From assembly GCA_001179505.1 (NCBI GenBank), contig CDMY01000212.1, forward strand, positions 1 through 64,000: a stretch of DNA of 64,000 nt. The letters run 5' to 3'. The stretch is from Vitrella brassicaformis CCMP3155 (lineage: Eukaryota; Protista; Chromerida). Shown in pieces: positions 1,991 to 36,945 of the stretch; positions within the stretch are counted from its first letter, which is position 1; every line of letters starts with the position of its first letter. Under the pieces are notes generated by a model. It was not told where the DNA came from and did not search any database. It was given only the letters and a program-made list of their open reading frames with translations. The translations under genes were made by a program, and so were the position numbers.

Positions 1991-3655
1991 TTACTCACCG
2001 ACCAAGAGGCCGCCCAGCCCGCCTCCCCAGCCACACTCTGCAGCACCGCAAGGGCCATCAATCCCTGTAAGCAGAAATGGCACACGCGAAATGCATGCCG
2101 TGTGAGTGGCTCGACGATGGGCGGCTGCGATGGCTATCAGCTTCAACAACTCTACTCGGTGGACTCCCTCTGCCGCCCCAGAGCCACGCCCTTGGCTCTG
2201 TGGGTCCGCGTGTGTCGACGATGTGCGGGCCCGACGGCCGTCTTGCACACTCGACTCCACAGTCGCCGACTCCCCCACCTCAACAGTGCCGTGTGCACCC
2301 TGCCTCTGGCCGTCCTGGGCCCCCACCGCTGCTGGTGGGTGGACTGTCGAACCGGCCTCGTTCCCACTCTGAGGCTGTGCATTCGTGGCCGGTCGGCTGC
2401 TCGCTGGTGCTGCCGTCTGCCACTGTGGTACCGTCTCACGGCCCGTCTGAGGTGGTGGCGGGGGTGGGGGCTGGACGGCCAGATGCTGCTAGGCGCCTGT
2501 GCACAGTGGCGCCGTCACAGCCGAGTGGGTGGCCGCGAGATGCTCCCCCTGCCCCCTCATGGGCAGGTCCGCCCCCTGCCGCCCCTTTTCGATGGCGGTG
2601 TTGAGGGTGTCGACCCGCTCATACTGTCGCTGCCGCCATGTCTGGACGTCCATGCAGATCCGGTGCTGTTGCTCTAGCAGCTGCCCCAGCAGTGTTCGGT
2701 CTGTGGCGCCTCGAATATGCTCCTCGATGGCTCGTTGCCTCTCTTCATGGTAGGACACTTGCCAGTCGATGTGAGCCAGATAGGTATCCGACGGCGCCCC
2801 CACTCTCGCTGCCACATCCGCCCTCGCCCGTCGTACCATCTCTGCCTCCGCCGTCGCTGTGGCGGGGTGGATGGGTATGAAGGCTGGCTGAAGGGCTGTC
2901 TGGGATGGGCCTGGGGCTGATGCTGCTGCTGCACCTGGTGCTGCTCCTGTGGACATCTGCTCTGTGGGTGAGGGTCCGGGTGACGGGATGGGGGATGGTT
3001 GGGTTGGTTGGGGTGGTGGGGGTGGTGGTGGGGCATTGGTAACGCCTTCCGGCGCACCGCTCGTGTTGACTGACGAACTGAGGCCGCCGGTGCCTCTTCG
3101 TTGTTCGCCGCCCGCCATGCTCCGTAGGACGCGCTGTTGTATCTCTTCTCGGGTCAGAGTGTAGTTGGCGGGGTCGCTGGGGTCGGCCACCTGCAGGACG
3201 CCGGCAACGTTGGCCCGAAGGTCCTCCAGCTGCTCAGACGACCACTGCTCGGTGGCAAGCGCCGCTGCTAACGCCCTCACTATCGCTTCTCCTGGCCCTT
3301 CGTTCGGCTCTCCATTGAGCCTCGAGGATCGCCCTGACGCCACGGGAGGCTGTGGCGACGTCGACGCACCATACCGATAGCCCTGCACCGCATTCCGTCC
3401 TTGCCGCACCTCTTGGGTCGTCACTGATGTTGGGGGGACTTGTTGAACCCCTGGTGCGGGTGCGATGCGAGAGACCCTCAGTCGTCCGCCGACGAGTGAG
3501 ACTGTCTCGGGTGGGTGGGAGCGGGACGAGTCCGGAGGCTGATCAGCCCCTCGGTCGTCCGCTGTTGCAGCTGGTGCAGGGGTAGGTGGGGTGGGTGAGT
3601 TGAGGTCGATGAGGTCTCCTAGGTCAGCGAACGGGTCTCTGCCGTTGGAGCTCAT
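1991..3655 (-). CDS. Pro/Ala-rich hypothetical protein interrupted by one in-frame TAG at 2489-2491
   Basis: ORF from ATG 3655 (MSSNGRDPF...). After the TAG the same frame continues (QHLAVQPPPPPPPQTGRETV...GAQDGQRQ...) to 1991. Confidence 0.55.
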
Positions 3656-4800
3656 TGGCGTCGTCAGCCTCACTGGTCAGGGGTCGCTGTTGCTGCGCCC
3701 ATGTGGAATGTGAATCCGTCGATGTCGTAGCCGTATGTGACTGTGTGATGAGGGACGTCAGTCGGTCTCAGCTCAACGGTCAACGGCAATATGTAGTAGA
3801 TAACGGTCGATACACGAGTCCCACGAGAGTCATACACGAGTAACTGCACCACCACACCACACACACAAACAAACCACACCAACCACACACAACAGAGGTG
3901 AGCGAGGATGGGTAGGTTAGGTGAATGGGTAGGGGGGTGGTGTGTGAGTGACGTACCGGTGAAGGCGTGTGTGGATGCCCTGTCTGTGTCCCACACGCCG
4001 CTAGTGAGAAAACCAAACCACCCTGCACCACCACAATACGCCCACGCAAAAGGATAGAGGTGAGTGGTGGTAGGCATGTCATACAGTGTGTGTGTGAATG
4101 ACATACCGCATGTGTTGGGTGGTGCTCCACACTGACGGTACCCCAGACCAAACCAACAACACGATACACATGGACCTGAACCACCAGAGGCACACAGTAA
4201 GTGAGAGGCTGGATGGGACGCATCACATGAGTAGGTGCGTACCAGCTAGACGTAGTCAGTGTGTCTCTGATGTCCCGATGTCACCCATGACCGATACGCA
4301 CCACATCACAACCTGCACGCGCCATGAGAGGACACACAAGCCAGTAGTGGGTAAGATCATGGTCAGTGAGTAGGTGGGATAGAGTTCCGTACCGATATGA
4401 GCAGCATGACGACTGAACAGAGGCAGTCCAATGCATGCCATCACTGACGAATACCACAGGCACTCTGCAGCCATGCCAACGTAGGAGAGCGATGAGTGTC
4501 CGTGTAGGAGTATACATGTGGTGTGTATACGTACCTGTAGCATAGTGCATGGCACCCAGGGCGATGGTACGTCGTCAGGCATGGTCATGTGCAGACTGCG
4601 AGCTATGAGCTCCGTGTAACCGGTAGCTGATAGCTTGGCCCACTGAACTGAGCCATGGCCAACATCGCACCAATCGCCAACACAATAGAGCGTGGATACA
4701 ATGGGACCAACCATGATGACATATATGCATAGGCGGCGGTATGTCACCGCGACAATTCGTGAGTGAGGTGGAGCGAGAGATGAATGCCGAGCAAGCTATG

Positions 4801-6200: not shown

Positions 6201-6343
6201 CACGCCATCACCTGGCCATACGACTTGTCTGCCCACGCAGCCTTGGTGCGCAGCTTCTCAACTAGGCGGCTGAAAAAACCATTGGCCTCTCTGCCCGACA
6301 CACCATCCACCGTGACGCACAAGGGGGTGAAGTGGATGGACTT

Positions 6344-7223
6344 CGCAGCGTCCTGGACCGGTAGTCCGTTTTGGTTGGTTGCCTAACGATGTGCCCATGT
6401 GTTGGGCGTAATCATGGGCATTCAAAATCACCGACCAATGGTGGTGCCGATATGCGAAGCCGGCGAGATACCCATGGGTAACCTTTCAAGGCACACCCCA
6501 ACTTCTCACAGAGAGCTTGCGGCCAAGCAAACATGGGAACCAACTTGTCAGGCGTGTTGCCCTGAACAACGTGCACACCACAACATCCCGCCATGTGCGG
6601 TCCCCGCGGAGAATCACCCATGTCACTTCTATCGGCGAGTCATGGCGCCTCAGCCAAGCCTCCCCACGGCACGCCGTCCACACCACACAGTAGCCCTTGA
6701 CACCCTCTATCCATCGGCCTACCCATCTGCTCCCCAGCGCGACCATCGTCACTTTGACTCAGACCGATTCTGTCTTTCGGCGAACAGATCGGCTCTTTCT
6801 GACAGCCTGTCGGCTCGCTGCGGCCTGCCTTGTACCTTAGCGAGGTCGCCTCGTCACGCCCGACACGGTGAGAGCTCAATCAGATGGGAAGATGACCGTC
6901 AGACGCACTCAAACTCTCACTCTGTGTCTGACTCAGGTCTGTGCGGCGTTTTCTGACCGTTTTGACTGTCATGCGGACTCCTTGCTTCACTCAGCCGATG
7001 ACGGACGACTCACTCACTCACCCAGGTACTCACACACTGACAGGAAGGCCCACTCACACACATCCATGGAGATGTATACATATACACATATGTACACAGG
7101 GTCGATCGACTCATCTGCTGCCTCTTCTGGGTCTCCTGTGTGCCTGCAGGCGCCTCTCTGTGCACCTGAGCGCCTCGCGGACCCCTTCTCTCTCTCTCTC
7201 TCCCCTTCCTCCACCCACCACCC
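6344..7223. repeat. Left arm of a near-identical inverted duplication (right arm 9887-10687, interrupted by an N gap)
   Basis: 6344-6610 is the reverse complement of 10418-10687, and about 6992-7223 is the reverse complement of 9887-10117. Confidence 0.95.
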
Positions 7224-10687: not shown

Positions 10688-10873
10688 CTTGTCCTCGCAC
10701 ACACGGCTGTGGTGGGCCTTCTTGGCCTTGGCCTTGTTCTTGAGGATGGAGGCGGTCGATTGCTTGCGGTAGGACTTATCCGAGGCCCACAGTAGATTAT
10801 TTCACCTGGTGAAATAATATCCATTTATCCATATTGGGCATATCGGGCAGCTACACTTGGTACGTATATACGT

Positions 10874-11776
10874 ATGGTGGGCGATAAGGGTGCGTTGCAA
10901 GCCCTTCTCAAAGGCGAAGACGGTTCCCATAGGTTCAAAATCTATTGTCTTGCATTGCTGCTTTCTTTATCTCTTGTTCTGTGGACGTTTTGGGACAACT
11001 CCTTTTTGGAAGTCCCGGTCCATCTCTCTAGGCTACTCAGGCTCCCACCATCGGGCAATCTCACGAACAGCTGCGGATTCAGTCACGAGTCTGAATCCAT
11101 GCCGGATGCGATACGTCGTGGGTACGTGATGACTCTGCCTGAGGCTGATGGCGAACCCGGACGTTACTCTCGCTTTTTGAGGGAGTGGACAGCCGCATAT
11201 CCCGCACTCGATATGCAGCAAATCAAGACGTTCCGGGCGCCCAGACGAGGGCTGGGAATCCTTGCCGGCAACATCCACGCGGTCGATCGTGCTATCGAAG
11301 ACAACGTTGACACGGCAATCTTTCTCGAAGATGATGCGAAACCCTTCAAGCCTGTCGATGCAGAGACATGGAAGGCACAATTCGACAAGCTTCTGATGCG
11401 ATGGCCCAATAACTCCATGGCTCTGTTCTTGGGCGCACACAATATCAGGCCTCATAGAGTGGATCCAAAGAAGCTGAGTCGTTCTCCGGAACTCCTTGAG
11501 TCCGGTATCATACGCGCGGACGATGCATGGGGCGCGTATGCATATGTGGTGCGAAAATCGCATCTTCGTTGCCTTTCGAAGTACCTCAGGGACTTGGTCG
11601 CTCAGGATAGCAGAGCTTATAGCCACGACGCCGTTTGGTGGAAGGGACTATTTAAGACTGAGACGCCGGCGTATGTGTCAGCCCCACTGCTCGTCGACCA
11701 TCATCCTGGCTTCTCGATGACTTGGGGGAGAAATCGGAGTGATGCTTGGATGGGGAAGAGACAGTGGTGGAAGTAA
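10874..11776 (+). CDS. GT25-like glycosyltransferase, intronless, type II membrane anchor (copy 1)
   Basis: 300-aa ORF with an N-terminal hydrophobic anchor, AIFLEDDA (EDD motif) and WGAYAYVV, typical of family 25 glycosyltransferases. Confidence 0.75.
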   Translation: MVGDKGALQALLKGEDGSHRFKIYCLALLLSLSLVLWTFWDNSFLEVPVHLSRLLRLPPSGNLTNSCGFSHESESMPDAIRRGYVMTLPEADGEPGRYSRFLREWTAAYPALDMQQIKTFRAPRRGLGILAGNIHAVDRAIEDNVDTAIFLEDDAKPFKPVDAETWKAQFDKLLMRWPNNSMALFLGAHNIRPHRVDPKKLSRSPELLESGIIRADDAWGAYAYVVRKSHLRCLSKYLRDLVAQDSRAYSHDAVWWKGLFKTETPAYVSAPLLVDHHPGFSMTWGRNRSDAWMGKRQWWK

Positions 11777-13330
11777 AAAGAAACAGTCCAGTTTTCTTGT
11801 TGTTGGGCCTTCACTTTGCCCCTTCATTACTTCATAAGGGTGTTGCAGCACTCTGTATGGATGAGAGACCATATCCATGAAGGCAAGCCATGACAAGATG
11901 ACTCCTCATGTCAATTTAATTCATTTGTCAATAGATTCATGATATCACTATTCAATGTGAGGCAATTCACCTCGCTTCTGCTGGTTCAGTTTTTTATGTC
12001 ACCCGCTTGTCGTCTGGGACAAGAGGAAGAGAAAGGAGGATGACAGCAGGCATACACCATTTGTCATCATCGTCGAGACATGATGGTGTCACGTATCCAT
12101 TTTTTGTACGAACGCCGACAAGAGCTACCTGTTCATCCCACTCTTGTCTCTCTTGGCTAGACATCGGCTAGTGCTTGTTTTGGATGGAAACCCTACTTTG
12201 TTGGCCTCATTCGCCACACATAACCTTGGAAAAGGTGTGGGAAACATCTCAAAATCGACGAAGTGACAAAAGAGACGGAAATGATCGCATGACATCTGCG
12301 AATGCTCAGCCGGTGCCCAAGTGTCAGCTGAAAAAAGTCAGATATCACGCTTTTTACTGAGTCTCACTCACGGCCCCTTGGTTTCTGTAGGCAGCTGTTG
12401 AGATGTCTGGATGGTGCAACTCATGTTGTCTGCCTTCGGCGGTCTCGACAGCAGCTGGCGTCGGTGGTGCAGGACGAGGTTCAGCCAGCCGCCGCAGCCG
12501 GGTATGTGAAATCCAGGGGTAGTCAAGGGAATCTTGGTGAGCCGGACCCCTCCCTGGTCACTGCAGGATGTCCAGTACTCGCGACCAAATGAATGCCCTG
12601 TGTGCTCATGAGGACGCTCAAATGAATGAACGTCCCCAGCTTTTCTCCCGTCCCAAATTATCGAAGAGAAACGCATGGGTTTCTCTGCTTTTGAGGGTCT
12701 TTTCACACACGGTAACTTCTGTTTGTCTCAATCTTCCCCCTCCTCCCATCATGTATCGTAAGCACAGGTCTGCAAAAAAGACCTGCCACTTGGGATGTGC
12801 GCGACATCAAAATAAGGAAAGGCAGGTACAGGGCGCGGCAGGTAGGAAAAGGCGATTGGAAGGGAAGCGTGAAGAGAAGCACGAAGAGAGACAGACTGGG
12901 ATAGAGGGATGGAGGGACGGCCAAGAAAGACACAATATGAATGCTACACCACCGGTATCCCACCGCTATTGGTCATCACGTACCCACGACGTATCGCACC
13001 CCTGCCTTCCCCTCCCCTCCCCTCCCCTCACAGCCATCCATCAGCCCACCCATCGCGTCGCGCGAGCGACGCGATTTGATGATCATTTCGACTGATGCAT
13101 TCACTGCTGCGGGCGGGGGGCCGGCATGATTTATGTGATTTGCTTGCTGTCATGCCTGCTGTTCACGCCTTTGTGCCGTCACGGACCCACTGGACATCAT
13201 GTTGATGACTCCTCTTCCATGCAAACCAGCTTGTGGAGATCAAGGGTGAATCAGACTCAGGAGACACTCAGGCTCACTGCGAAGGGTTTCGCAGTCACGT
13301 CGACAGGCGGATTGAATGAGTGAATGGCTG

Positions 13331-21891: not shown

Positions 21892-24313
21892 ATGTATATG
21901 CGGGTCGGCTTTTCATCACTGACCTGGTTCTCCGTCTTCCTGGTGTCCCTCAGCTTATGGTTCAATTTGTGGGGCGGACCTTCCACCAGCAACAACAGAA
22001 AGTTCATCACGGATGCCCTGATGCACCTTCGGATGAGAGCACAAGAGAAGGCGAGCATCACCAGGTTTCTTTCAAGTGGACAAGACGATAGCGCCTTCGC
22101 TGATCTGAGGGCGTTCGAGGCCGATCTCGAGGTGCCCTTCTTTATATTGGACACACCTGCGCTGGTGGAGCTTCATCGTATGTGCCAGGAGACTGCACAG
22201 AGCATTCTCAACGGCGACTGGCCTTCTGAGCTTGTTCTGGATGACAAGAAGAACATCAACGAGGTGTACTGGCTCCATCAATTGTGGACCGACCCCTGGC
22301 GGACACGCGACCCAGACAAAGCTCTCATCTTCGTCTTGCCTGTGTATCCAGGTGGGCACTGCATCGCAGATGGATCGCTGATAACACACGTAGGTGTGTA
22401 TGGAGTGTGGGCAGTGCTGTTGCTGGGGAGGGCGTGTGGGGAGAAGGATCGGAAGAAGGTCCACAAGCTGGGTGCACAGGCAGTTAAGGAGGTGAGAGAA
22501 AGCGTTCTTGTTAGAGGTGTCTTATTCGATGTCGGCCTTCGATTCAGGTGACCCAGCTGCCTGCCTGGCACAGGAATGGCGGCGTTGATCACGTGATGGT
22601 GGTGAGTATGCCGATGCATCAACCGCTGTATTCGTGTGATCATTTAATCAGGCGACTGACTGGCAGTTCAAGGTGCCTGGCGGCTTCCAGAGGGCGCTGG
22701 GCAAGACCTTCGCTAACTTTGCCAGGAACGTCACATGGGGGCGACACGTCACCGACAACCGTTCGTGCGGATAAAGAGAGGATCAGACTCTAGTGATGCA
22801 ATGCTCGAGTGTCCGCTGCTTCTCAGATAGAGGCCTCTTCGGCTGCGCCGTCACCATTCCCCATACGTACACATCCGTACATACCAGTCTGCGAGCACCA
22901 TGTGTGTATCTGCCTGTCCGTGTGGCTGTGTGGGTCTGCAGGTCGTCGATGACGGCGCTACAGCCTGCCTACCAGCCCTTTGAAAAGGAGAGTCTGCTGG
23001 AGAGGGGTCTGATCGACGCCGCGGATGTGTTCGAGGATGACAGGCTTGATGTTGCATTCGACCCGCCCTCGCGGCTCGACTGGTTTGCCAGAGACTACAC
23101 CATGTTCTTCCAAGGTAGCTCCCCTCACGTATTTGCAAACGTGCTTTTCTGATCAAGGCAGTTTGCATACAAATATGCTCAACATACGCCACACACACAT
23201 GATGTCTGCATGTGTGAGTGTGTCCAGGTACAGTTGATGGCATGCGGCCGTTCAGAATACTGGCACTGAAGCAGTTGGCGGGCTGGCACCACCGTCCAGC
23301 CTCATGTCACGACTGCACACCCGCCAACAATGTTTTCGTCTCCACCACCAACGTGGCTGGTGTCGAGCGGAAAGGGAAAATGCCAGATTGCCCGCGCGAA
23401 CAGAAGAAGCTGCGCGTTCAGAGGGTCGTTCAGAGGGTCGAAATGGGCAAGTTCGAGGGGTGTCGCGCCCCTTCCGACCAGAAGAAGCGACATCCGCTCT
23501 ACGCGGAGGCATCATTCATGCATCGGCTTGCAAATTCCAAAGTAAACCTCTGCTTCCGCGGGACAGATGTGACGAGTTCGAGGAATGTGGACGGCTTCTG
23601 GACGGGGACGCTCAACGTGCTGATTACCGAAGTGGAAGACATGTATAAGTACGCCATAGCGTTTCAATGCGAGATACCGTGGAGGTGACCACTTTAGCAT
23701 CAAACCAAAGACACGCACTCGCACACGTCATGCAGCAGCTGCATGATTATTCTGCATGGGAGGAGAATGAGGCAGAGACATGTCTGTCGCGTGTGTGTAC
23801 GTGTGCAGGAACTTCACATATGCCATCGAGGGCTCTGCGTTCAAGGAGGATCCGCGAAGAGCACTTAGGCCTGTCTTAGACGAGCTGTTTCTGCACCCTG
23901 CGTCCATCCGTGAGAAGCTTCGACTGATGGAGTACTACAGTAGGAAAGTGCTGTGGAACGCACCCAACAGCACAGCGGCCAGGAGCACGCTGCGCGCCAT
24001 GACGCGACAGTGCCTCACTGACGAGATGAAAATGGAATGGCTGCAGCGAACACACATAGAAGATGGTGAGTGGTCTGACCTGATTCACGGTATGAGGTGT
24101 GTGTGCGTGGGTTGGATGGATGCAGGTGGTGATCGATATGGCGATCATCCACTCTTCTCTCGCTGCGCCTTCCCGGACACCTCAGCGACGCGCGAGGAGC
24201 AGAGAGAGCCGTGCGTCAGCTGCTGGGTTGGCTACAAGACACCCACCAAGAAGCCGCCCTCCACAGCCGACGAACACCACACCACCAGTGCACAACTGGA
24301 GGTGCAGATGTGA
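21892..24313 (+). CDS. Exostosin-family (GT47) glycosyltransferase, multi-exon
   Basis: N-terminal TM anchor; WRTRDPDKALIFVLP, PAWHRNGGVDHVMV and SKVNLCFRGTDVTSSRNVDGFWTGTLNVLI...IPW match exostosin motifs. Introns are GT-AG. Confidence 0.85.
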
Positions 24314-24780: not shown

Positions 24781-26179
24781 TTAGAAACGACTGTAGTTCT
24801 TAATAAGGGGTACCAAGAGCTCATCAACCCTGCCGACATTGTTCCCGTCCTCGTCAACTACAATGGCATTCGACTTGACCTTTCTAAAGAACAGGGGGTG
24901 TCTGCTGCTAATCAATTCCGCCAACTTGGTGAGTTTTAGCTTATGGAAACACAGTGGCCCCAGTGGTGAGCAACGCCGAGCGCTCCCGTAGCCGCAGGCA
25001 TCTCTTGAGCCTTTCCAGCAGAGGCGGGTATCGCAGAATTCTTCTTGGATGTCTGGATCAAGCTGTCCAACGTGGTCAGTGCGGAGGCCGCCGTTTACCT
25101 GTAATGCATGAACATGTGAGGACGCCTCTGACCGTGAAACATAGCTGCCTACTTGTCTCCATATCTCTCGGTTGCCAAGTGTACGGCGAAGAACATGGTG
25201 TGGAAACCATTCATCGGACATTCCTGTCATCTTGCCGGATCGGCGTCGTGGCGCACGGTGAGAACGTGTACGATCAAGGCCCTGTGCGGCCACAATTGTC
25301 GCATGATATCGATTGTAGATTCGCCACTGCATGTGCTTGACATCTACACACAAAAATGACGGGAGATATTGCTGCACTTCCTTTCCGCCTGTAAGATACC
25401 ATATCCATCCCTTTCCGCATCTTGACACGTCAGGTTCTGGCTCCCTGCTTCGTCTGCCACTTCTCGGTCGGGTTCCATCTCCCACAGTCGACGTGGATTG
25501 TAGCTGAGTACAGCATAAAACGTAAACCCGACTGGCTACACGTCTATCCTTCATACCAGAATCTGGATGTCGGCAGACCACTTTCGCTCACTCGATGCTC
25601 AAACAAAACGTCATACAACACGTCAGGATGAGCCAGCGGGATGTGCGAAACACTCAACAGTGCCATCATTTGGTTGCACGGGTCATTCAGAGAGGCTTCC
25701 CACAACGAATTCTCGGCCGCAATGAATTCGCCATATTTCATCCGAGCCGGTTTGGCGTGTTTGGTTCGCTTTGACGCAGTCACTCCACTCACATTGTGAT
25801 GCAAATGGACGTATACAGCGAACCGTTGCCTGTCGCTGGCCAGGGCGAGCCACTCCTCCCACAAAGGAGCGAAAGGCTCCTTGTCCTTTACAAGAAATAG
25901 TAGAGCAACTTTTGGTGGCCCATTACAATCGCTGCAGCCTCCGATAGCAGCTGGCTTGCTTGATTTCCTCACACAATAAAATTGCAAAGGCGAATCTGTT
26001 GTCTTGAGGGGCACAAAATGCCTTTCTCTAAACTCCTCCAGCTGAGATTGTAGCTGACAGTCCCGATCCCTCTTCGACAACAGGAATCGGTGGTCGAAGT
26101 CGGAGTCGAGGAAGACCAGACACCCTGGCAACGCCAGGACCAGCGCTGAAGCCGTCAGCGCGAGAAGGGATAACCTCAT
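24781..26179 (-). CDS. Core-2/I-branching-like (GT14-related) glycosyltransferase, multi-exon
   Basis: KVALLFL...PLWEEW...FAVYVH, YGEFIAAENSLWEASLNDPCNQMMALLSVSHIPL, KHMQWRIYNRYHA, SDEWFPHHVL and LFFRKV follow the Branch-family motif order. There is an N-terminal anchor. Confidence 0.8.
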
Positions 26180-26312
26180 GACAGCTATACACACGTAAGC
26201 TACACACAATTTGCGTTCACACAATATGCGTTACACACAAGATACAAGTAACAACTTACAATTTGCGTTCACCCCTTGCTTGCGTACTAATCGGAACCGG
26301 GCACTGCCCCCA
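26180..26312. promoter_or_regulatory. Short divergent (bidirectional) promoter between the GT14-like and GT43 genes
   Basis: 133 bp lie between the opposed ATGs, and AATTTGCGTTCAC occurs twice. Confidence 0.55.
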
Positions 26313-29817: not shown

Positions 29818-30723
29818 TTACTTCCACCACTGTCTCTTCCCCATCCAAGCATCACTCCGATTCCTCCCCCAAGTCACCGAGAAGCCAGGATGACGGTCGA
29901 CGAGCAGTGGGGCTGCCACATACCCCGGCGTCTCAGTCTTAAATAGTCCCTTCCACCAAACGGCGTCGTGGCCATAAGCTCTGCTATCCTGAGCAATCAG
30001 ATCCCTGAGGTACTTCGAAAGGCAACGAAGATGTGATTTTCGCACCACATAAGCATACGCGCCCCATGCATCGTCCGCGCGTATGATACCGGGCTCAAGG
30101 AGTTCCGGAGAACGACTCAGCTTCTTTGGATCCACTCTATGAGGCCTGATATTGTGTGCGCCCAAGAAGAGAGCCATGGAGTTATTGGGCCACCGCAAAA
30201 GAAGCTTGTCGAATTGTGCCTTCCATGTCTCTGCATCGACAGGCTCGAAGGGTGGTTTCGCATCATCTTCGAGAAAGATTGCCGTGTCAACGTTGTCTTC
30301 GATAGCACGATCGACCGCGTGGATGTTGCCGGCAAGGATTCCCAGCCCTCGTCTGGGCGCCCGGAACGTCTTGATTTGCTGCATATCGAGTGCGGGATAT
30401 GCGGCTGTCCACTCCCTCAAAAAGCGAGAGTAACGTCCGGGTTCGCCATCAGCCTCAGGCAGCGTCATCACGTACCCACGACGTATCGCATCCGGCATGG
30501 ATTCAGACTCGTGGCTGAATCCGCAGCTGTTCGTGAAGTTGCCCGATGGTGGGAGCCTAAATAGCCTAGAGAGATGGACCGAGACTTCCAAAAAGGAGTT
30601 GTCCCAAAACGTCCACAGAACAAGAGATAAAGAAAGCAGCAAAGCAAGACAATAGATTTTGAACCTATGGGAACCGTCTTCGCCTTTGAGAAGGGCTTGC
30701 AACGCACCTTTATCGCCCACCAT
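29818..30723 (-). CDS. GT25-like glycosyltransferase, intronless (copy 2, inverted relative to copy 1)
   Basis: Near-identical to 10874-11776, with about a dozen amino-acid differences counted by eye and one extra codon. The 3' flank is also shared. Confidence 0.75.
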   Translation of the reverse strand: MVGDKGALQALLKGEDGSHRFKIYCLALLLSLSLVLWTFWDNSFLEVSVHLSRLFRLPPSGNFTNSCGFSHESESMPDAIRRGYVMTLPEADGEPGRYSRFLREWTAAYPALDMQQIKTFRAPRRGLGILAGNIHAVDRAIEDNVDTAIFLEDDAKPPFEPVDAETWKAQFDKLLLRWPNNSMALFLGAHNIRPHRVDPKKLSRSPELLEPGIIRADDAWGAYAYVVRKSHLRCLSKYLRDLIAQDSRAYGHDAVWWKGLFKTETPGYVAAPLLVDRHPGFSVTWGRNRSDAWMGKRQWWK

Positions 30724-31364
30724 ACGTATTCGTACCAATATTTATGATTGTATATTATTTCACCAATTCGATATCTGAGAGGGATTGGAGCGCGAAGGCC
30801 GATTGACCATCCAATTGGCTCTCGGGCTGGCCGACCGGAGGCCGCACAGGGTGCATAGATGGTCGGAGCGAGGGAAGCGCAGACCTTCCTTCTTCTGCTC
30901 TGCTCACGCTCAGCCCGATATAGAAGAGCCTTTCCAGGACAGCCACGTCCCTGCAGAAGAACACAAGAGTTGCACATCTCGATATCCGTAAGCCACGAAC
31001 ACGCTTGCATGCATACGGGGCAACCCGGGATTCTCACATAGCGCGTGGCAACCCGGTACCCTCACACATCACGCGGGGCAGCCCGGCAATTAGACTGAGA
31101 AACGAGGCGACGGAGGGTGTGCATGCAGCTCATTTCTTATTGCGGGAGGGGGAGGGGGAAGGGGGGAGGGAGACAGGAAGGAGGGAGGGGAAGAGAGACA
31201 GACCACCTGACACGACAAGAGAGACGGGGGCCACACACATCACCACACACACACACACAGGGCAGAGGGGGGGAGGAAGGAGGGGAGGTAGACAGATGGA
31301 CACATCATGAGTTTGGTGCTTTCTTTGCTCTGCCGTTCGTACGTCAAAAACCTCTGGGTCAGCT

Positions 31365-31810: not shown

Positions 31811-32483
31811 ACATGCATCAGCGACCCTCGTGGCATGAGCTGGCAAGAGGTGCATCATGCACGAGGGTCGCTGAGGAACACTGGTGACCGCCACTGCGTG
31901 TACCATTGCCTGCCTGTGGTCAGGGGCGCTGTCCCCCCCAAGGAGACGTCCAGGCCTCTTGGACGCTGTCTCACCAAAGACAGAACAGTCGGTTTTGGAG
32001 GATTGTTTTTTGAGACGGCAACAGTTCACCCATGGGAATACAGCCGACAGTGCTGAATGCTGCCGCTATCAAGACGCGATTAGAATGATTCCCAAACAAT
32101 GGCAGCATTCTTTTAGAGGTCTTCGAGATGCTCATATCACTACTCCCCGCTCGACAAGATACAAAATACCGTAGCACACGTCATCCATCCATTGACACTG
32201 CCCAGGGTTTGCATGCATGAATCCCGTGGAGCATGCATCCACGTACGTACACGGACAGATACCCGCAAAGCAAACCACGCATGGGACCGCAGCAAAACAC
32301 GCGGACAGACAGAGACAAGGGATGGATCCCATTAATTGCCCCACCCAACCACCCCCACCACGCCTCCGCTCGTTTGTCTAGCTGGTCAGCAGGTATGTGT
32401 CACGCATCCACAATCGGACAGGAAAGGGAAAGAGATCGGCGATGGTAAGACAGAAGGACCTGGTGTCCACTTGATGCCCACAT

Positions 32484-33581
32484 TCACCTCTTTGGAAACA
32501 AGGGCCACGGAAAGGCTGCAAACAGTGCACGGTAATCAAAGTCGACAACTGGAGGCATCGGTCCCATGTCCAATGCTTCTTGGTACGAGGTCGCTAGCTG
32601 AAAACTCCGATTCGTTGCATAATAGTAATCCTTGTACTTGTGAAGCCGTCCATTCGAGTTTGTCTCCAACATCAGCCGCGAAGGAATCCCAAATGATTCA
32701 GCAATGATCAACCCATGCAGTGACGAGCTCACGACAAACGCGCACTTGACCAGCTCGCCCAGCACTACCTTCCAGTCCTGCATCGGTGTGATCACGTGAC
32801 CGGGATACTCGGATTCATTGAGGCCCCGGCGAATCTCCTTAATTTGAGGGACATAACAAACATCGTATTTGGGTGGCCAGTGAAGTTTGAATTCGGGGAA
32901 AAGACATGGTACGAGCATGCCCGCATCGCCATACACCACAGGCAGAGCCTCCACATCACCATGTTTATTCTGCAGCAAAAAGCTTCGTGTCTCGGGACCT
33001 CGAATGGCAAACAGAGTCACATTGCTTGGGAGCGGTCGCCTGAGCGTCTGTTCGCCCAGCATTCCAATCGACCAGCCGTAATCGCCAGAGCGGACAAAAT
33101 GCAGTACAGAGCCAATGGGAAGTAAACACTTTCCTCCTCGACGGCTTCGCAGGTTTCGCCACGGAAGTTGGAAGCGGCGACCGAGCATTCTCTCAACCAG
33201 AGCCAGCCCAATGTCATCGCCGAAATTCTTTTCGTTGGAGTATGTGCAGACGGCAAATCCCAAATCAAGTGGGAGGGATATGCATGAGGCATTTGCCAGT
33301 GACTCTTCGAGGCCTGGCACCTGGACACTCTGGCGCACACACCCTGGAATCGGTGCCGAGGATGCTCCTGGGACGCCTGTGTCTGGCGTAGCTTTGGAAC
33401 CCTCACTGAACCTGTTCGTAAAATTGCCGAGTACTGACGATCTGAATAAAAGAGGGAGAGGGACCGGCGATATGAGATACCGCAGCTCCTCCCGAAAACA
33501 CAATGTCCACAGGACAAGAACCGAAGCAGACAGCAGAGTAAAACAGTAAGACAAAGACAGCATCAGCATGTTGTCTGCCAT
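32484..33581 (-). CDS. Polysaccharide pyruvyltransferase-family (ExoV-like) protein, intronless, with N-terminal membrane anchor
   Basis: NFGDDIG, IGSVL, AIRGPET, YGDAG and VVSSSLHGLIIAESFGIP match the pyruvyltransferase fold. The start could be 33602 or 33581. Confidence 0.85.
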   Translation of the reverse strand: MADNMLMLSLSYCFTLLSASVLVLWTLCFREELRYLISPVPLPLLFRSSVLGNFTNRFSEGSKATPDTGVPGASSAPIPGCVRQSVQVPGLEESLANASCISLPLDLGFAVCTYSNEKNFGDDIGLALVERMLGRRFQLPWRNLRSRRGGKCLLPIGSVLHFVRSGDYGWSIGMLGEQTLRRPLPSNVTLFAIRGPETRSFLLQNKHGDVEALPVVYGDAGMLVPCLFPEFKLHWPPKYDVCYVPQIKEIRRGLNESEYPGHVITPMQDWKVVLGELVKCAFVVSSSLHGLIIAESFGIPSRLMLETNSNGRLHKYKDYYYATNRSFQLATSYQEALDMGPMPPVVDFDYRALFAAFPWPLFPKR

Positions 33582-33909
33582 TCCTGTCTGTACATAAAGC
33601 ACTGATGACCACTCTACAGTGCTTTATGTACCGCCAGAAGGCGACCGTTAACGCACAGACTTCCTTCAGCTTTGACTTGATATTTGTGTGAGCGTCTGTG
33701 AAGCAGCATCTCGAAGACCTCTCAAAAAGATGCTGCCATTGTTTGGGAATCATTCTAATCCCGTCTTGATAATGGCTGAAATTCAGCGATGAGTAGGAAT
33801 AGCACAGTGCACTCCCAACCAGTAACACGTCATGACATTTCGTCTCAAGCGTGGTGGACGGAAATCAGCATTGAAGATTCGCCCATCCATATAGAACGCT
33901 GCCGTCTCT

Positions 33910-35290
33910 GAGGTGATCGGCCCCTCCTTCTCCCTCCCCTCTCTCCAGGACCTTCTCTCGAGACCGCAGGTTCGGCTACAGCAGCGCCTGACCGATCAAC
34001 TGCACAAGTTCCCCTTCAACGAGCTCTTCAACTCCCTCTCCCCCGACAGCAGAGCCCGCGCCCGTCTTCTGAGCTGCCAAGGGCCTCTTTCGTCTGGTTG
34101 GCTGTCAGCAATCCCTTCCAGCGATAGCAAGATACTGAACAATTTCCAGTATCGTCATGCCGTCGCCGGGTGTCTCGGCTTTGCCGTCCCGCACGCAACC
34201 GTCTCGCAGCGATGCATCTGCGGCGGGGAGGTCGGCAATTTTGGCGATCACTACTACGTGTCTCACACGGGCCGTGAGCGGGTCACGAAACACAGCAACA
34301 TGCGCAACTTGTTTGTTCGCATCCTGGCTGAGGCAGCTGTTCTTTCCAATGTGGAGGTGTCTCTGCACAGCCTCGGCATCACCCCGCCTGACGACAGCCC
34401 CAACAGCTAGCGGATGGACATCTATTGTGTGATCGACGGCAGTGACTACCCCTGCCGGCCTGACGACTCCCTCACTCCCTTCCACCCAACAGTCAGCCGG
34501 CGCAGTGCACAGCTTCCGGGTGGCAAGGCGGCGCAGCTTGCGGAGAATGACAAGATCGACAAGTATGGCCCGACCGCCCAAGCAGCCGGCTTCCGCTTTG
34601 TGCCTCTCGCTGCGGAGACATTCGGCAGATGGGGAGAGAAGACCATGGACTTTCTCAAGATGCTCGCCAAGCGGAAGCCCCGCCCCACATCCATTCCCAC
34701 GGAGGAGGACACAGCTTTCCGAGAGAGCGTCAACAACCATTGGAGCCAGCTTCTGTCCGTCGAGCTGATGAAGCACAACGCGTTTCGAGTGGCGAGTCGT
34801 GCGCAGCGCGCGGCGGCCGCCAGAGGGCCACGGAGGGCCAGCGCGTTTCTTGAGGATGTTATGGTGTGCTTGTGATAGCCACTTGGGGGTGGTGCTTCTG
34901 CAGTCAGAGAGACATTGGTGTGAGGCGTGCATGGCGAGTCTCTGGCAGCCTCGTGAGGGAGGCCTTTGCATTGGCCTCGAGAGCATTGCAAATACGGCCT
35001 CTTGTCGTTCTCACCGGCTTGACAGCCATGGATGCACGACGCGCACACACATCAAGGAGCACAGGAGGGTGCATGTTTGTCTGGGGTGGTCCGTGCTCGT
35101 TTGTCTTTTGCGTTGGCACGCAGTGCGAGTTTGTGTGTGCGTGGTGGGCGACGCCACTGGAGGATTCGCCAGGCGGGCGCTGAGGATGGTGCTGCATGTT
35201 TGTCGCGTGAGTGAGAGTTGGTCGATTGATACAGTCCATTTCATGAGACCGACAGACTTTTCCTGTCGTTCTGCTATGTGTTAGTCCATC
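33910..35290 (+). mobile_element. 5'-truncated non-LTR retrotransposon with Zn-knuckle and restriction-like endonuclease C-terminus (CRE/R2-like), with an in-frame TAG at 34408-34410
   Basis: SSGWLSAIP, CICG..GDH..., then RMD...ENDKIDKY...FVPLAAETFGRWG, the typical RLE domain. It is followed by a long 3' non-coding region that has a second copy at about 5993-6200. Confidence 0.85.
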
Positions 35291-36945
35291 TCCCCCCACC
35301 TGCACACGAGTGGACCGCAACATATATTGCAATGGCAGACACACACTGACGACAGTCGAGTGTATGCACAGACGCGAAAAGCAACCCACGTCACACGACT
35401 TCTGAGTCCCTGATAGGCGGGAAGCCGTGGTTTCGTCGAATAAAGCGGAAAGGGAGGAACATGTATTCTCTGCATGTGCGCACGTTTTCAGAATTTTTTC
35501 TTGTGACAGTGCGTTTCTCGTCTGCGTGACCTGTTGAAATGTGAGAGCTTGCTATCTGAAGTATTACATTGTAATGAAGTGATTTTGCGAGACGATGGCA
35601 TTCATGAACTATTTACCTTGCCCTACATCGGTCAACACGCTCCACTGACTGTTCCTTTTTTTAGAGACCACACTATATATTCACACACACCGCGCATCAG
35701 TGCAACGTCATACCACACGTTCGCCACGCTATCCATGCTCGTTTCACATCCGGATGGTGTGAGCTAAGAAAGTGTCCCACGCGCAACCTTGGGTCAAAGA
35801 CCCAGGACACACGTACACACTCCTTGTCTGCACACGAACTGAAGCGAGGGCACCCACACGATCAGCCAGACTCCTCCCTGCGATCTAATTGCTGCGATCA
35901 ACAACCCCCGTCTCCTCCCCTCCCCAAGACCGGAGGAAATACTTACAGAAATGTAGTGGAAAGTATCATGCAGGAGGGCACACAGAGAGAGGAGGGCAAT
36001 ACACATTTGCCGCCTATCTGCCTGCCTACATCTCAGGCGCACAGGGACGAGATATGCACTTATGACATGTCTCTAAGCGAAAAGTCACCAAATCACGAAA
36101 GCGAGAGCACAGCCAGCACCTACCCAACATCCTTCTCTCCAGCACCCGCCCCTTGCCACCATTTGACGCCAGCGAAGGTGGAACCACCTCCACAACTGGC
36201 AACTGACCACTAGAAACTGACCGCTACGTGAAATTACTAAGAGTGAGCTTCGACTGTGAATGAATGAATAGAAAGTATGACGAGACAGCTGTGCACCACT
36301 CGTACGTGAAGATGAAATCTACGACAAAATCTACGATAAGACGTTTGCCAGCCTCTGCCTAGACGTAGCACAGCGATACAAACGCCACTGCCTGTGTGGG
36401 GCTCTCAAGCAGAGTATAGGCAGGGACGCAGGACACATACAATTCTTCTCTGTACACGAAAAATCAGAGCACGGTCACGGTCTGCAGTCTACAGAGAAAA
36501 ACACCAGAATGGAATCAGTCCCCCGATAACACACAAAGGAAATGGCGGCGAATGTGGTGGGAAAGAATCATGCAGGCACACAGAAAGCAAAACACATGTG
36601 TGAGACAACCTCTTTAGGCAGCCAGCCACTGTCTGCAATCAACGTCCGAATCTCGGATGGAGTAAAAAAGCAAGACCCAAAATCTGGAGGGTGGTGAAGG
36701 CAGTCGTGCGCTCCCGGACAAACGGGATCGTCAAGCACACAGAGGTGTAGGAAACGGAAGGTGGAGAAGACAAGGACAAAACGACAGCCGCAATAGTGAG
36801 ACAGCAGGGGGGGTATAGGGTTAGGCTCGTCACGACGGAGATGGACATTTAGCCTCATCACGACGATGAGCCCGAGAATGTCAAAATCAACCGTATCCAC
36901 AGCATCCCAACAAGAGGGGGCTGTGACCGACCATAGAGCGTCGGA

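Follow-up and report, generated by a model that had tools for sequence, protein, structure and literature searches.

Pvg1p of Schizosaccharomyces pombe is a Golgi pyruvyltransferase of the PF04230 family (PMC4872226). The gene analysed in this study, from the chromerid Vitrella brassicaformis CCMP3155, likewise encodes a eukaryotic PS_pyruv_trans enzyme behind an N-terminal membrane anchor, and by analogy its predicted role would be the pyruvylation of a terminal sugar within the secretory pathway. However, the Vitrella pyruvyltransferase has no sequence match to any PDB chain, Pvg1p included, its catalytic domain is nearest to bacterial enzymes, and its anchor appears to be second-hand, coming from a GT-A enzyme. 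The family closest to that GT-A enzyme is GT25, as human COLGALT1/GLT25D1 and bacterial beta-1,4-galactosyltransferases are the best structural matches of the Vitrella glycosyltransferase (GT), whose E-D-D motif (residues 152-154) is invariant at E152 and D153 and nearly so at D154. In contrast to GT25 proper, the Vitrella GT is not matched by PF01755, and its ~199 relatives make up an unnamed family.

Young chimeric genes are formed by segmental duplication or ectopic recombination, through which the body of one gene receives its 5′ coding segment from a different gene. The Vitrella case resembles this class in that a donor fragment was left over and the locus was duplicated later, and it differs in that the transferred part is a signal-anchor with its stalk, which appears to have replaced an existing anchor. 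It is not a case of intron-mediated exon shuffling, since both partners are intronless (transcripts colinear with the genome). Swaps of cytoplasmic-transmembrane-stem regions between Golgi glycosyltransferases have also been engineered. There, too, the anchor and stem of one enzyme are combined with the catalytic domain of another, whereas the Vitrella event is natural, proceeded without the cytoplasmic tail, and leads to a Golgi location that is predicted.

Two glyco-enzyme families on scaffold C212

The window, i.e., the whole stretch of DNA analysed here (64,000 nucleotides), belongs to scaffold C212 of the published genome, which comprises 72,700,666 bases in 1064 pieces (PMC4501334), and all genome searches reported below span these 72.7 Mb. 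The C212 region is eukaryotic and repeat-rich, and its contents include a gag-like ORF, a WD40 gene and several glyco-enzyme ORFs (Table 1). Two of the latter lie between the GT copies; the GT14 "Branch" ORF is divided between two frames, and its anchor is unrelated to the module described below.

Table 1. Positions of the features discussed in the text, numbered from the first letter of the window
Feature	Position	Strand	Remarks
GT copy A	10874-11776	+	300 aa; type II-like, GT-A, GT25-like
Shared module in GT copy A	10943-11106	+	codons 24-78; DNA and protein alignment
GT47-like ORF	21892-22551	+	between GT copies A and B; anchor unrelated to module
GT14 "Branch" ORF	24781-26224	-	PF02485, E 6.5e-7, domain at 25544-26224; between GT copies A and B
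GT copy B	29818-30738	-	inverted duplicate of copy A; 1.7 kb downstream of chimera, same strand
Shared module in GT copy B	30491-30654	-	DNA alignment
GT remnant	32419-32469	-	14 nt past pyruvyltransferase stop; W-T-P-G-P-S-V-L-P-S-P-I-S-F-P-F-L
Pyruvyltransferase ORF	32484-33602	-	ATGs begin at 33581, 33569 and 33563; 365 aa from the first
Junction/linker	33349-33381	-	T-G-V-P-G-A-S-S-A-P-I; between end of GT homology (33382) and start of C953 homology (33349/33347)
Shared module in chimeric pyruvyltransferase	33382-33548	-	~55 codons: membrane helix and ~40-residue stalk
Transposable-element fragment	33913-34407, on to about 34875	+	~330 nt upstream of first ATG of chimera

The pyruvyltransferase gene is chimeric, and a second copy of it is located on scaffold C608, where the ATG at 33563 is also found. 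Residues 195-309 match PF04230 with 33 bits against a gathering cut-off of 25.3 (E 7.8e-8), and the body of the protein has about 160 homologues, most of which carry PF04230. The non-Vitrella homologues are mostly bacterial proteins of ~270 aa with 30-42% identity, and the bacterial ones at 39-42% identity align only with the C-terminal ~67% of the chimera; judged from these alignments, the catalytic domain is probably closest to bacterial enzymes. In an alignment of 24 sequences, both chimeric copies included, these copies kept all of the family-invariant columns (25/25), e.g., N115, G117, D118, H285, K311 and D314. A third, distant pyruvyltransferase-like frame (28% identity, E 6e-8) was observed at G000:C608:11939-12562 (+), about 2 kb from the C608 chimera.

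Copies A and B of the GT are inverted relative to one another and match over about 940 nt with 96-98% identity and a dN/dS of 0.23. The RNA of copy A is unspliced and takes in the module, as three transcript-like contigs follow positions 10710-11995 colinearly at 100%, gapless and with the module included. The MMETSP peptide P0124, compared with window positions 10874-11776 and 29821-30723, equals copy A except for three copy-B-type substitutions in the module (P48S, L55F and L63F), and may represent either a mosaic assembled from two expressed copies or an allele produced by gene conversion. Just upstream of the transcript start at 10710, two 100% complementary inverted-repeat pairs (6344-6613/10418-10687 and 6993-7223/9887-10117) flank N runs; their appearance suggests a palindrome created in scaffolding or assembly and not a biological feature.

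Pfam searches at E up to 10 gave no match for GT copy A, P0002 or P0003, PF01755 included, and a PF01755 search of the whole genome gave 0 matches, while 2/60 GT relatives were matched weakly by this profile (best E 0.0014). Two relatives were retrieved by word search and 199 by exhaustive profile search. The closest source-named relatives are from the protists Aplanochytrium, Pirum and Gocevia, all five named relatives being protists, and most relatives bear N-terminal hydrophobic anchors of their own, unrelated to the module. The family, which counts about 200 proteins and lies outside Pfam, therefore appears by sequence to be eukaryotic and not bacterial. An AF2 model of the GT built with 60 sequences reached a pLDDT of 88.7 and predicted a helix at residues 17-41, an earlier model from a 5-sequence alignment having reached only 41. 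The top PDB matches of the model in Foldseek were COLGALT1 (9evk, 8zgc) and a beta-1,4-GalT (8xkd), with E values of 2.5e-9 to 1e-7, and the language-model neighbours of the GT are labelled GT25; sequence searches of the PDB gave nothing useful. As the fold matches GT25 and PF01755 is absent or weak, the GT was assigned to an unnamed GT25-related family of GT-A enzymes. No similarity was detectable between the catalytic domains of the pyruvyltransferase and the GT (BLASTP E 0.15), one belonging to PF04230 and the other being a GT-A domain nearest to GT25, in agreement with the unrelated folds claimed in an initial reading of the letters alone (hereafter the sequence-only reading).

Fragments of another GT type, represented by a paralogue on scaffold C647, are scattered at L024 (C861) 3525-4661, L022 (C953) about 6343-6477, C647:4165-4524, C288:82526-82870 and C254:3552-3752. 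Stop codons occur in some of the fragments, and one fragment forms an in-frame fusion downstream of a segment judged by eye to be a copia-type integrase. The C647-type gene seems to have been repeatedly captured or broken by transposons.

An anchor and stalk common to both families

The chimera and the GT each have a single N-terminal hydrophobic helix and no other membrane segment, and the Kyte-Doolittle 19-residue maximum over this helix is the global maximum in both proteins (1.94 at residues 21-39 of the GT; 2.04 at residues 5-23 of the chimera). In the GT, a basic tail (H-R-F-K) precedes a helix of 18-19 residues, and a stalk rich in proline, serine and leucine follows it, a layout predicted to be that of a type II enzyme of the secretory pathway. 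The chimera has 0 basic residues before the helix, where the GT has H-R-F-K, and R-E-E after it.

Helix and stalk together make up a module that is homologous in the two families. In the chimera the helix runs from Y-C-F-T-L-L to L-W-T-L-C-F, and the stalk contains a G-N-F-T-N sequon and ends in T-P-D. Pyruvyltransferase and GT have 41% of residues and 60% of bases of the module in common, and BLASTP of the two 81-aa N-termini gave 24/59 identities (E 3e-5). One might suspect a chance or convergent likeness of two leucine/serine-rich anchors here, as the helix is biased in composition and the block is short, but the controls argue strongly against it. The Smith-Waterman score of the N-termini was 80 against 23.8 +/- 4.4 for shuffled sequences (z 12.8; 0/5000 reached 80), and shuffles in 12-residue blocks, which hold the hydrophobic segment in place, gave z values of 7.6-8.6, with 0/2000 reaching the observed score. 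Taken separately, the helix gave a z of 4.9 and the stalk a z of 7.4, neither being reached by any of 5000 shuffles. Five real N-terminal anchors used as controls (those of the C953 pyruvyltransferase paralogue, the C647 GT paralogue, the orthologue-like P0003, and the GT47-like and GT14-like ORFs of the window) scored 17-28, i.e., at chance level. At the DNA level, local alignment within stretches of 800-900 nt around the gene starts paired 33548-33382 (-) with 10943-11106 (+). Bases were identical in 104/173 columns (60%), and the score was 194, whereas locally shuffled sequence scored 81 +/- 11 and never more than 130 (z about 10). We therefore regard a fortuitous likeness as extremely improbable.

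The DNA homology stops at both edges of the module (33548 and 33382), without extension on either side. Counted on the alignment, about 74% of the bases in the helix codons are identical between chimera and GT, and the G-N-x-T-N sequon of the stalk is conserved in all five module copies. The N-terminal sequences quoted in the sequence-only reading are present at the positions it gave, and its proposal of a colinear, homologous anchor and stem was borne out by the BLASTP, shuffling and DNA comparisons above. Its coordinates for the block, 33414-33548, are otherwise right, but the shared block reaches about 32 nt further 3′, to 33382.

A profile of the module searched against all six frames of the 72.7 Mb genome found five loci only, and every one of them belongs to the pyruvyltransferase or the GT family: the chimeric pyruvyltransferase gene on C212 and its copy on C608, the GT copies A and B, and a GT remnant on C608. 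Because the module was found in five loci from two families, where three or more unrelated families had been set as the mark of a general targeting cassette, we do not consider it to be one. A sixth profile match (C791, E 0.47) was discarded as a chance match in a non-genic frame. The C953 anchor was also considered as a diverged copy of the module and rejected at a score of 28 (z 1.3), as was ongoing gene conversion between the neighbours at a DNA identity of 60%. A word search with residues 1-66 gave no match at E up to 10 among 5.8 billion proteins, and was underpowered because a match of ~25 bits cannot reach E 10 in a collection of this size.

Direction and history of the transfer

Three lines of evidence, from a paralogue, a motif and a remnant, point to the GT as the source of the module and the pyruvyltransferase as its recipient. 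The first comes from the pyruvyltransferase paralogue on C953 (P0004), which is 72% identical to the chimera from residue 64 on. It has a different N-terminus with a hydrophobic segment of its own, and it is found in a transcriptome contig that is colinear with the genome and has no introns. The DNA homology between the chimera and this paralogue starts at 33349, 33 nt downstream of the end of the GT homology at 33382. As the paralogue is already anchored, the chimera would represent the replacement of one anchor by another.

The second line of evidence is the 3′ end of the shared block, F-S-x2-S-x3-P-D, which aligns with the GT motif C-G-F-S-x3-E-x-M-P. In the GT alignment this motif (C-G-F/L-S-x3-E-x-M/A-P) is invariant at C67, G68, S70, E74 and P77, and it is present in the C647 paralogue, in P0003 and in the Aplanochytrium protein P0125, while no counterpart was found in the 24-sequence alignment of pyruvyltransferases. 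The overlap of the module end with a motif of the GT family suggests that the module belonged to the GT from the start and that the pyruvyltransferase received a copy of it. On the other side, the helix and stalk that precede the C-G-F-S motif in the C647-type GT paralogue are unrelated to the module, so that the origin of its first ~40 residues within the GT family is not proven.

The third line is the GT remnant directly behind the chimera, which on both scaffolds starts 14 nt past the stop codon, at the W-T codons of the membrane-helix end. In the window it is broken off at 32418 and is near-identical to its C608 counterpart, with one indel at the break; on C608 it runs in frame through the stalk into the GT catalytic domain (residues 36-201, 78% identity). 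The C608 remnant stalk is intermediate between those of the chimera and the GT, the nucleotide identity of the chimera stalk being 65-66% with the adjacent remnant and 57-60% with copies A/B. In the motif stretch, 19/24 bases of the pyruvyltransferase DNA are identical to the adjacent C608 remnant (counted on the alignment).

These observations also bear on the model of the sequence-only reading, in which a single anchor cassette, existing on its own, was attached in separate events to two foreign catalytic domains of bacterial type, as a general way of bringing such enzymes into the secretory pathway. The sharp bounds of the block at 33548 and 33382 would suit such a cassette, as would the nearest paralogue in each family, which has no module upstream of its catalytic domain, and the three stalk lineages, which are about equidistant (57-66% nt) against GT catalytic parts that are ~89% identical. 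Nevertheless, we consider independent grafting improbable, since the block contains a GT-family motif kept in other protists, the closest named GT relatives are eukaryotic and each has its own N-terminal anchor, the pyruvyltransferase lineage already had an anchor, and the genome search found no third family, the GT47-like and GT14-like neighbours included. In consequence, the "bacterial-type" label holds for the pyruvyltransferase and not for the GT. The intronless structure it described is supported by the transcripts of GT copy A and, on the pyruvyltransferase side, of the C953 paralogue, both colinear with the genome. The notions of a single cassette grafted twice, of a route that brings foreign enzymes into the secretory pathway, and of modularity in general are not supported, in view of the module end lying in the GT motif, the expressed non-chimeric paralogue that is already anchored, and the restriction of the profile matches to two families, respectively.

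Transfer in the reverse direction was considered as well, in which the module was born in the pyruvyltransferase lineage and acquired by GT copies A/B, e.g., through a stalk-to-stalk deletion at a locus like that on C608. A deletion between the chimera module and the downstream remnant would indeed recreate an intact GT with the module, and nothing detectable is common to the N-termini of GT A/B and the C647-type GT upstream of the C-G-F-S motif. This course would need a GT stalk already in place downstream, however, and the GT copy bears a basic cytoplasmic tail and an expressed 5′ UTR, while the 3′ end of the block matches the GT-family motif and nothing in pyruvyltransferases; we hold it to be unlikely.

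Window positions 32418-35710 are colinear with C608:14720-17996 at 90.5% identity. Since this segment contains both the chimera and the remnant, both are older than the duplication. The dS is ~0.38 between GT copy A and the C608 remnant, 1.6 for the split of the C953 paralogue and 1.4 for that of the C647 paralogue. The identity of about 74% in the helix codons is similar to neutral divergence at a dS of ~0.38, which suggests that the fusion is much younger than either paralogue split.

The transposon fragment upstream of the chimera has the same placement in the C608 copy, as part of the colinear duplication. Genome-wide, this element was matched at 101 or more places, of which some lie within open frames of 1262-2191 codons, and it has no Pfam match; it is probably a retroelement-associated domain present in high copy number. 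In addition, an inverted duplication of ~85 nt (32040-32140 and 33705-33787) brackets the chimeric gene. Its sequence occurs three times only in the genome, the third occurrence being the C608 counterpart of the upstream arm, and with only three copies it was taken as the scar of a local rearrangement and not as a MITE.

We propose that the anchor was replaced by local rearrangement in a transposon-rich cluster of glyco-genes and that the result was later copied to a second scaffold, a reading to which we give a probability of roughly 70%. According to this proposal, the module would have originated as the signal-anchor (one helix) and lumenal stalk of a lineage-specific GT-A enzyme of the GT25-like type. 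A local rearrangement would then have joined GT codons ~24-78 to a pyruvyltransferase copy without its own first ~54 codons, giving a product composed of GT anchor and stalk, an 11-residue linker and the pyruvyltransferase catalytic domain. Immediately behind this new gene, the 3′ portion of the broken GT gene would have persisted as a dead remnant, and the entire locus would have been duplicated afterwards to give the C212 and C608 copies. As to the exact mechanism, the candidates are an insertion with duplication of codons 36-78, integration through stalk homology, and deletion within a tandem array. The GT cytoplasmic tail and 5′ UTR were not found upstream of the chimera module, where the alignment halts at the helix start, so a simple insertion into the GT gene would need a second event; this event, replacing the original 5′ end, was probably a transposon insertion. 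The chimera would thus have inherited the helix and stalk and not the tail. If translated, it would be expected to insert as a type II protein whose catalytic domain faces the secretory-pathway lumen, presumably in the Golgi, like the donor GT.

Selection, expression and significance of the chimera

Purifying selection acts on the catalytic domain of the chimera, where dN/dS between the C212 and C608 copies is 0.29 (binomial p 0.002). The coding sequences of the two copies are 96.6% identical against 88.6% for the upstream flank, and both copies have an intact open frame of 359-365 codons. The only later ATG lies inside the catalytic domain, which means that any functional start must be upstream of the module. 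Within the module, the two chimeras differ by 7 amino-acid and about 1 synonymous changes (dN/dS 2.5, small numbers), which fits relaxed constraint.

Among 5.8 billion proteins, none was closer to the chimera than the C953 paralogue (71-72%), and exact look-ups of the protein and transcript in public collections, for every possible start, gave no record, whereas GT copy A and the C953 paralogue both have transcript records. A scan of metagenome contigs found 0 chimera transcripts but missed the known paralogue transcript too and is therefore uninformative. It is possible, though doubtful, that the chimera is an unexpressed by-product of transposon-driven rearrangement, i.e., a young pseudogene that is still open and in which the module has no function; such a fate would be compatible with the origin proposed above. 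The lack of a record would be explained in this way, and the transposon fragment upstream, the GT remnant downstream and the inverted duplication around the gene, together with a module that evolves freely between the two copies, are in line with it. The open frames of both copies, the constraint on the catalytic part, the higher conservation of the coding sequence than of its flanks and the retention of all invariant residues speak against a pseudogene.

For the anchor replacement itself, a functional reason may be sought in the substrates. The GT25-like (probably galactosyl-) transferase and then the pyruvyltransferase could act on the same glycan to build a pyruvylated galactose cap like that of fission yeast, and the anchor transfer could have been selected since it brings the two enzymes together in one Golgi cisterna. 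We put this forward tentatively and think it rather unlikely; if true, the locus would be a natural experiment in which the identity of anchor and stalk encodes a sub-Golgi address in an alveolate. The weight of the finding is modest, because there is no general cassette and expression of the chimera is unproven. Anchor replacement as proposed here would nonetheless constitute a clean and datable natural exchange of a signal-anchor between different folds, with the junctions and the donor leftover still visible, and would show how a small local rearrangement can give a glyco-enzyme a new address within the secretory pathway. Moreover, the locus physically links a pyruvyltransferase to a GT25-like transferase in a chromerid, a relative of the apicomplexan parasites whose glycans are almost unstudied.
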